Below, piece after piece: positions 49,901 through 52,900 of a DNA stretch of 64,000 bases. This DNA comes from Aplysia californica (Eukaryota). The translations under genes were made by a program, and so were the position numbers. The notes under the pieces are model-generated. The model was not told the origin of the DNA and did not search any database. It saw nothing but the letters and a program-made list of their open reading frames with translations. How positions within the stretch are numbered: position 1 is the first letter of the stretch; the number at the start of each line of letters is the position of its first letter. The stretch lies in assembly GCF_000002075.1 (NCBI RefSeq), contig NW_004797332.1, positions 435,378 through 499,377 of the forward strand. The letters are read 5' to 3'.

Positions 49901-52900
49901 CCTCAATATTCTGGCTCCTTTATCAGATACCTGTGTTTTCCCCAGACGATCTAGTCTTCACAATGTCAGCGACTTGTTTGTGATGGGTGGGGCCTTAGTG
50001 CTGGAGTCCTTGGCGCTGCTGCACTGGTGTGAGAGAGAAGGCTGGGGGCCACTAGGCATCTCTGGAGTCTCCATGGGAGGACATGTGAGTACAGTCAGAA
50101 TTGTCTGAGAAACAATTAGTGTTCAGAGTTGTAGAAAGAAGACAAATTCTCTTTATCAGAGGACCAGTGGTCTGTCTTTGTTCATAATTATCCCTTCAGG
50201 GTAAAACCTTCAGAAATACCCAGCGCAACATAATTATTATTTCATCTGACTTCTTATCAATCAGCAAAGACTGGAGTAGATTTTCCAGCTTGAAAACCAG
50301 GTCATTTCTCTCCCCCACTCACTGACTTTATTTTAATATAGTCAACATTGTCCAAGACACCCACCCATTATCTTTGAGAAAACTGACTGTCTTAGGCAGT
50401 GGGACATATTGAACAGTGTCATAGTACTTTCAAAAACCTGCAAGAGTGGGAGTGGAAAGTGGTTGTTTGTACAGGCGATTATCTTGGACAGGTAGCTGTT
50501 AGAGAAGGTTTGACTATTTTCTGCATGAAAGTCAGACTTCCTAGTATTCAGCGTGGGGATTTCTACGGATAGTAGTGCACTTGTTTGGGCTTGATTTGGA
50601 ATTTTTGCTGTTGAAATTAAAGAAAATATTTAAACCAATGCCAACATATGAAAAAGAGTATCTTCAGCAGTTACAATCTTTCATGTGAAGTTTGCCTAGC
50701 TTTCTGGGTATACTGACGAGGTAGCTAGGGCAAAACTTTGCACCAAAATATGGGTAACTTTCTGTGGGTCCTCAGCAACATGAGATTGTGCTGATTGTGC
50801 AGATTGCTTGCTGCAGTGAGAGGCCATGAGAGCACCCTGTGGTCAGGGTTAATTTGAGGTCATTCTGAATTGGTTTGGCAAAGCACATTTGATTGACAAA
50901 GAAAGTGCCATGTGGCATGCCTTGCTACTGTTTTCTGAGATAAGAGAATGACGGTTTTGTGTTGAAAAGGGAAAGTAGACATGCAGACTGGAGAAATCTA
51001 GTCTTGACTTTCTTTTGTTGAAATGTGAGGGATATCTTATGAATTTGTAAATGTGCCAATAGAAGGCTCGCTTTACTTCTCTATAAATCCCTGAGTCAGC
51101 CGGTACATTTATTGTTACCATTTCAGGACTTTCCAGGGGGTCATCATGCACAAGTTCCTGTTTCTTTGATTTCCAAGTATTTTTTAAAATGTTTTTTTTT
51201 TGTTCCATACTCCCCCCCCCCCCCAAAAACAAACAAACAAACAAAGAAACGAAAAAAAAAACCACCTCCAAAGCCAACAACAACAACGATTTCCAAGTAT
51301 CTGTTTGCCCTTTTGGAAGTATCACTCTCTTTTCAAGTAGAGTCGGGGATTGAAACCTTCACCTTTCAGTTGAGGTCCTGCTGTGTTGTGGGGCTAGCTC
51401 ATAAAGTAAGCACATGTGGAAGTGCGCCATTGTTGGACTCGAAAGGTGTGTGTGTGTTTATTAAACCCTGATCTCAGAAGAGGTAATCTAATACCGTACT
51501 TGGTATAATAATTCGTAGGACACTACAAGACTGACATTTTGTCTACATAAGAAAGGAGTCTCTTCGTCCTCCCCCCCTCCCCCCCCAGTCCCCAGCATGT
51601 CTGCATGTGATCAGTTTGGGCTGTGGTTTCTGAAATTAAAAATCAGCACATTTGTACATGAGGAATTCAAAAGAGCCAAAGGGTGTTGAGACATGTTTTA
51701 AGAGAGGACTGATTACTCTTTGTGTGATCATTCTGGGCTTTTCAGATGGCAAGTGGAGTGGCGACTTTGTGGCCCAAGCCTCTGTCAGTCGTTCCCATAT
51801 TGTCATGGACAACTGCCTCCATTAGTTTTACTGAGGTAACACATTGTGGCTCTCTGATTTGTAAGCCTAACCGTGACAACAGTGATATGTTCATTAAAAG
51901 AAAGTGTCGTACTGCTGTGAGGGGTAACAATGTGGATCTTTGGGTGCACATACAGTCGAAATTGTCCAAGATGGCTACCCATAGGTGAACATAAAAGCGG
52001 TTGTCTTGGACAGGTGAAAGTCTGAGATAGTGTCATTATAATGAAGAAAAAAAGGCAGTTAGGGAAGTGGGAATTTGGACAGGTGGCCGTTACAGCAGGT
52101 TCGACTGTACTTTATAATTCATCCAAAGTTCCTCATTGTCTTGCAGATGTGGTAAGTATGCTTTGCTTTGGAATGCAGGATATGGATCCAGACGTACCTA
52201 TGCTACTGGTCTCAGCTTTTGCTCCTTTAGCTGTGGTCTGGTGACTTGAAGCCCCTGTAATTGGGTCTTTTTTTCCTTTTTCTGATTTTTATCCCCTCTT
52301 TCAACAGACAGGTATTCTCTTGCTCTGGACAAAGAGATTTGACGAAAAAAAAATTTTAAAAGACAAATGAAAAGAACGGAGAAGTAGGGGCCTTTTGTGT
52401 CCTGCATTTCATTTAACTTTCCTGCTTTTTTTTTTTTTTTTTTTTTCACATTTCTATGCTCTGCCACTTTGTTGGCATGGGCAGATGGCCTCACTTGCTG
52501 CAACAAACTGGACCAAGCCTATCCCCCTCATTCCTTGTCTGTCCTGGAGCACGGCGTCTTGTGTTTTCACTCAGGTTTGTTCGAAGACATGTAAAAGTGT
52601 GTCAAATTTTCCTTTAAAAATTATATTTTTGTTGGTTTTGTTTTGCTGTGTTGTTTGTTTGTGTTTGTTGCATATGTTGTGTGTTTTTATTTTATGTCTG
52701 TGTACCTGCATGCAAGCAGGCTTGGTTCTTTATGCACATATTAAAAACAATTTTTTTTCCGGTTATTTCTTTCTTTTGGTACACTGAAAGCAATTTGTTC
52801 TCTTTGACTGAAGATGGTTTATCTGATGTGTTGCGTTGCGGACCATCTGATGTAAGTATTTTCTCATCTTTTCTTTGTCTTTTCTAATGGAAGCTACCCA

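Follow-up and report, generated by a model that had tools for sequence, protein, structure and literature searches.

The window, a stretch of 64,000 nucleotides from Aplysia californica, contains the gene for ABHD18 (Table 1). Database proteins that are identical to the window exons bear this name, and in agreement with the earlier note the exons, searched one by one, match the Pfam profile PF09752 above its curated cut-off and in collinear order. There is one ABHD18 locus in the Aplysia genome. Exon 8 is found in two copies, 8a and 8b, a numbering that agrees with the count of coding exons, and none of the other ABHD18 exons was doubled when checked. RefSeq already lists both forms, X1 (XP_005093408) with 8b and X2 (XP_035824379) with 8a, together with X3 that has 8b and a short C-terminus. 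X1 and X2 differ at 13 residues, all within 208–234.

Table 1. Features of the ABHD18 locus, given in window positions.
Feature	Position	Strand	Basis
ABHD18 coding span, start codon to stop	40962..57100	+	RefSeq isoforms X1, X2, X3
Exon 7, constitutive; ends just past the GxSxG elbow, Ser200 in GVSMGGH	49946..50084	+	
Candidate pairing stretch in intron, single-copy DNA, function doubtful	50806..50831	+	RNA pairing energies
Exon 8a, derived copy: Gly208, Leu212, Ile222, Thr226, Ser231; donor GTAACA	51746..51835	+	
Intron between 8a and 8b, 649 nt	51836..52484	+	
Exon 8b, ancestral-type copy; agrees with the family consensus at every conserved column	52485..52574	+	
Exon 9, constitutive; common acceptor of 8a and 8b	53750..53854	+	
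Exon 10: long insertion of low model confidence, followed by the presumed catalytic Asp563 and His590	54768..55766	+	

Both copies of exon 8 are 90 nt long, in phase 0 and free of stops, with AG before and GT after, and are spaced by 649 nt, as first described. The hand-counted identity of 17 out of 30 residues was reproduced, and 52 of the 90 nucleotides are the same, distributed as 17, 22 and 13 of 30 over codon positions 1, 2 and 3. The two exons match PF09752 at the same positions, 188–217 (E 9e-8 for 8a and 6e-10 for 8b), flanked by exon 7 covering positions 142–187 and exon 9 covering 218–246, and since both copies fall in this span between exons 7 and 9 a chance resemblance is excluded. 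It had also been claimed that 8a lacks both cysteines of 8b, and Cys222 and Cys230 are indeed both replaced by Ile; Cys222 is located in a conserved column (97% of the background peptides) and column 230 is variable. An assembly artefact or an allele is ruled out by the 52/90 nucleotide identity and by the same pair in other genomes, and a dead duplicate by the splice joints, the RefSeq isoforms and a pN/pS of 0.11 (see below). The intron between the copies contains a decayed dispersed repeat (about 51950–52110) and a 96-nt pyrimidine zone free of AG that precedes 8b.

The place of the exon in the protein was inferred from structure models of the database proteins P0271 and P0156; a search for a solved ABHD18 structure found none. 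Both isoform models show an alpha/beta-hydrolase fold by Foldseek, and the core is predicted with high confidence, with a pLDDT of about 90–98 across exon 8. The exchanged segment had been placed as the helix, strand and loop right after the nucleophile elbow, and this is the arrangement in both models. Ser200 is located at the elbow after strand 194–199, and exon 8 (residues 205–234) contributes the second half of helix 201–212, strand 219–222 and a loop, and ends with helix 229–233, which passes into the helical cap region. In alpha/beta hydrolases the residues following that strand usually border the acyl pocket. Ser200 is invariant and Asp563 and His590 are near-invariant; the three residues are common to both isoforms and are presumed to act as the catalytic triad. 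If one chain had both exon 8 copies, a core strand would be present twice, and alternative use should therefore be the working state. The insertion in exon 10 (window 54768–55500, about residues 310–500) is Ser-rich, has low model confidence and lies within the hydrolase.

Splice joints were taken from the assembled contigs of one run, X7, for which the status as RNA is a guess, and where rare forms are dropped and depths do not give true levels. The joints predicted for 8a, 50084>51746 and 51835>53750, are present in these contigs at a depth of 21, and those predicted for 8b, 50084>52485 and 52574>53750, at 17.8, all of them GT-AG, and both forms occur in this one sample. The joint 51835>52485, by which 8a would be spliced to 8b, is not listed among the X7 contigs, as expected from the proposed exclusion, and neither is a joint from exon 7 to exon 9. 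The exon contigs are letter-identical to the window and are therefore not counted as cross-species support. The raw RNA runs X21–X23 are uninformative, since their reads fall on repeats only and none on any exon. Three segments (51950–52110, 50336–50368 and 50467–50515) are decayed pieces of a dispersed repeat with at least 40 genomic matches at 71–85%, and they attract many loose-ended RNA reads that do not represent transcription of the host intron.

The protein cluster contains no Aplysia model with both exons or with neither. The mutually exclusive use proposed in the earlier note thus agrees with the X7 contigs, but it does not extend to the database models of several other species, as both exons are included in models from Biomphalaria, Bradybaena, Plakobranchus, Penaeus chinensis, Panulirus, Oratosquilla and Cherax. 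The exclusion may for this reason be leaky, although part of these models probably come from plain gene prediction. Annotated isoforms that skip exon 8 are P0425 (Portunus) and P0310–P0312 (Schistocerca), in which a core strand should be lost. Such models would be expected if the two exons were independent cassettes, with co-inclusion or double skipping as regular events and possibly an inactive form that tunes the dose, and the length of 90 nt keeps the frame so that NMD cannot clear the double and null forms. We consider this very unlikely, as neither of the two joints is found in the X7 contigs, the cluster has no Aplysia model of either kind, some of the double models probably stem from plain prediction, and the fold should not survive the doubling or loss of a core helix and strand.

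Several ways in which exclusion might be enforced could be discarded. Frameshift and NMD are ruled out by exons of 90 nt in phase 0 with no stops. Steric exclusion would need the branch point of the second exon to lie no more than about 50 nt from the first donor, and is not supported, with introns of 401–2947 nt and AG-free zones of only 11–96 nt before the second exon. U2/U12 incompatibility is ruled out by the ordinary GT (U2) type of every donor around the pair. A single element in intron 7, located at 50806–50831, could mask either acceptor and leave one exon open at a time. In Aplysia this stretch of single-copy DNA can pair with either acceptor region, at -25.7 and -26.7 kcal/mol, and does so better than all of 30 shuffles and all of 54 decoys taken from real DNA, with a target window that was chosen after the candidate had been seen. 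Pairing in Biomphalaria and Physella, where the comparison with shuffles gave 1/30 each, was rejected because it is not upheld against real-DNA decoys, and against such decoys the four other snails give no pairing signal (5/38, 14/16, 9/18 and 2/2). BLAST of the introns among eight species detected no conserved intronic sequence, and a docking element conserved with compensatory changes was not found across the snails, which are possibly too distant to show it. Like the docking-site and selector clusters of Dscam1 and ATE1 7a/7b (PMC7797038, PMC6071210), Aplysia has one candidate intronic element that could pair with both acceptors, but snail ABHD18 differs from them in the lack of a conserved element and of compensatory change, and masking by 50806–50831 appears improbable. 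As no hard-wired mechanism was found, the default is that exon choice would be set by splicing factors with some leak, which also fits the both-exon models in the seven other species.

The pair is conserved in relatives, as the earlier note had anticipated. Both exons, with 8a first and with intact AG and GT, are present in the loci of Biomphalaria, Elysia, Physella and Candidula, and proteins of Plakobranchus and Bradybaena agree with the snail pair. Between species 23–28 of 30 residues are alike among the 8a copies and 26–28 among the 8b copies, compared to 17–21 between 8a and 8b inside one species, and in the exon tree the first copies of the snails form one branch with a support of 100/99. 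The occurrence of the same pair in the same order across these snails places the duplication before the split of Aplysia, sacoglossans and pulmonates, which took place more than 200 million years ago. In orthologue comparisons, where pS is close to saturation, pN/pS is 0.108 (8a) and 0.065 (8b), in support of the claim that the duplication is old and that both copies are kept under purifying selection. A single copy between exons 7 and 9 is found in the loci of Pomacea, Patella, the bivalve Sinanodonta and Capitella. Three primate-like proteins, P0029 (bonobo), P0033 and P0093, were left out of the alignments, the trees and the column background.

Some features of 8a concern its splicing signals. 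The donor (51836–51841) reads GTAACA in Aplysia, Biomphalaria, Physella and Candidula and GTAAAC in Elysia, and is possibly a conserved weak or regulated donor. The codon for Ser207 (window 51752–51757) is AGT in 5/5 snail 8a copies and TCN in every other copy, and 8a has less synonymous divergence (0.67) than 8b (0.84). A splicing element inside the exon may be the reason.

The same exon is doubled in crustaceans and in a chiton. In Penaeus monodon the two copies are separated by 401 nt and the ancestral type precedes the derived one, opposite to the order in the snails, and both exon forms occur in database proteins of Panulirus, Oratosquilla, Cherax, Palaemon, Scylla and Portunus. The chiton Liolophura, known from its genomic locus, has two copies 557 nt apart. 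Against a column background of 102 distinct peptides from lineages without a known duplicate, one copy in the snails and one in the crustaceans have zero fixed departures from the consensus. The derived snail copy departs at exon columns 4, 8, 18, 22 and 27, corresponding to the fixed changes L208G, N212L, C222I, S226T and V231S/I at columns otherwise 76–97% conserved, and the derived crustacean copy at columns 4, 15, 22 and 27. In the chiton the first copy departs at columns 4, 8 and 27 and the second at 7 and 11. Columns 4 (Leu208, 94% conserved) and 27 (Val231, 91%) are altered in all three lineages, and the post hoc probability of sharing by chance is 0.003 with uniform columns and 0.017 when weighted by variability. 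Sand flies (P0401–P0404 and P0230) have Ala or Val in the Leu208 column, like the derived crustacean exon, in the only annotated form, and P0165, P0168, P0171, P0172 and P0420 have Ile in place of Cys222 in an exon that is otherwise of the ancestral type.

The pairs of snails, chiton and crustaceans probably arose by separate duplications. One ancient protostome duplication, followed by many losses and one change of order, would account for the departures at 208 and 231 that are common to the derived copies, and AU tests leave a single clade of derived copies standing (p 0.62, 0.47 and 0.43). The exon tree and these tests rest on 30 columns with little power, and one and several origins both fit. 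The reversed order in crustaceans, the single-copy loci in Patella, Pomacea, Sinanodonta and Capitella, the differing replacement residues (G/A/A and I/C/S) and the restriction of the AGT codon for Ser207 to the five snail 8a copies, with TCN elsewhere, speak against a common origin, which seems rather unlikely.

Taken at the level of the protein, the single ABHD18 gene, with one exon tandemly duplicated before Aplysia, sacoglossans and pulmonates diverged, would by splicing mostly one copy or the other give rise to two serine hydrolases of 636 residues with the same triad. The two differ at 13 residues in 205–234, a segment that runs from the middle of the helix after Ser200 through the strand that follows it to the loop and short helix toward the cap. 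Judged from the column comparison, 8b retains the ancestral sequence and 8a carries the fixed changes, which may reshape the packing around the acyl pocket, and for that reason the enzymes might differ in acyl-chain preference or in rate on cardiolipin and lyso-cardiolipins, possibly with regulation by tissue as the earlier note suggested. We give a probability of roughly 0.6 to the reading in which 8b encodes the standard enzyme and the pocket of the 8a form is reshaped, so that its chain preference or its rate is different.

It is also conceivable, but unlikely, that 8a is a low-activity or non-cardiolipin enzyme, and that the switch sets the amount of cardiolipin degraded and not which species. 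The near-invariant Leu208 (94%) and Cys222 (97%) are both replaced in 8a, and the PKM and KHK exon pairs work partly by such an activity-level switch, but the triad and the elbow are common to both isoforms, 8a is strongly conserved (pN/pS 0.11), and Leu208 is not essential, as the residue is Ala or Val in the only annotated form of sand flies. There is a small chance that the two forms are functionally equal, with differences fixed by drift and copies kept only since each is sometimes used. Many of the substitutions are conservative and the two predicted folds are similar, but the divergence is one-sided, with no fixed departures in 8b against five in 8a held across six species, and drift would not be expected to change the same two columns in three lineages (p 0.003 or 0.017). 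A wider version of the reading with a reshaped 8a pocket is tentative and on the whole doubtful: exon 8 would be a specificity switch duplicated independently at least three times, in euthyneuran snails, chiton and malacostracan crustaceans, with selection altering Leu208 and Val231 each time, to give a second enzyme with a different acyl pocket and a cardiolipin turnover set by splicing.

The role as a cardiolipin deacylase, which the earlier note mentions, agrees with a report that ABHD18 acts in fly and mouse cells as a species-selective cardiolipin lipase; the mitochondrial activity is shown for the fly and mouse enzymes only, and how they select cardiolipin species is stated there as open (PMC12173737). 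These proteins and Aplysia ABHD18 are PF09752 orthologues with a conserved elbow and a presumed Ser-Asp-His triad in both, and 8b fits the consensus, but no alternative active-site exon is described for fly and mouse (PMC12173737), and the mollusc forms are putative cardiolipin lipases. Splicing diversifies another ABHD cardiolipin hydrolase, as indicated by the forms ABHD4-1 and ABHD4-2 (PMC13572076). ABHD18, recognised only recently as the cardiolipin lipase of animals, has been proposed as a drug target for Barth syndrome. The exon pairs offer natural exchanges, already tested by selection, of the 30 residues that follow the catalytic serine, with the rest of the protein identical. They single out Leu208, Cys222 and Val231 as candidate positions for lipid selection. 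Masud et al. (2025) have reportedly also worked on ABHD18.

By analogy, 8a and 8b very probably belong with the tandem duplicated exon substitutions beside enzyme active sites that are known from KHK, PKM and ACOX1. Convergent tandem exon duplication is said to have been found in ion channels by Copley in 2004. According to a survey of human and fly (PMC9741552), homologous tandem exons are used alternatively in the metabolic enzymes KHK, PKM, PFKP and ACOX1, with a swapped region beside the ligand site and common catalytic residues as in ABHD18; these are other gene families, and the ABHD18 event is in molluscs and crustaceans. The main text of the survey has no mention of ABHD genes. It gives 27 families with convergent duplication in orthologues, and convergent gain is covered also in a review (PMC3342872); as in ABHD18, one gene acquires alternative exons in tandem in more than one lineage. 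The ten calcium-channel events of the survey all concern different exons, whereas in ABHD18 the very same exon is doubled in three lineages, and one copy is changed at the same two conserved columns. Exon 8 is a clean candidate for an alternative exon that evolved repeatedly. The earlier note knew of no description of such exons in this family, and no paper on ABHD18 exon pairs was found, but the isoforms themselves sit in RefSeq and this kind of event is already known; what is new is its occurrence in the ABHD18 family, the doubling of one and the same exon in several lineages and the common changes at 208 and 231.

Two other introns of the gene have unusual features. The minus strand of intron 2 (42479–44471) contains broken reading frames that look like the remnant of a DNA transposon, and a Pfam search of these frames gave no significant match. 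The intron after coding exon 5 (48266–49610), which precedes a 28-nt exon (49611–49638), looks like a U12-type intron; it begins with GTATCCTTTG and has TTCCCTTGAC about 12 nt upstream of the AG. Elysia, Pomacea, Physella and Sinanodonta (GT) have a similar donor behind the same codons, as has the chiton (AT).
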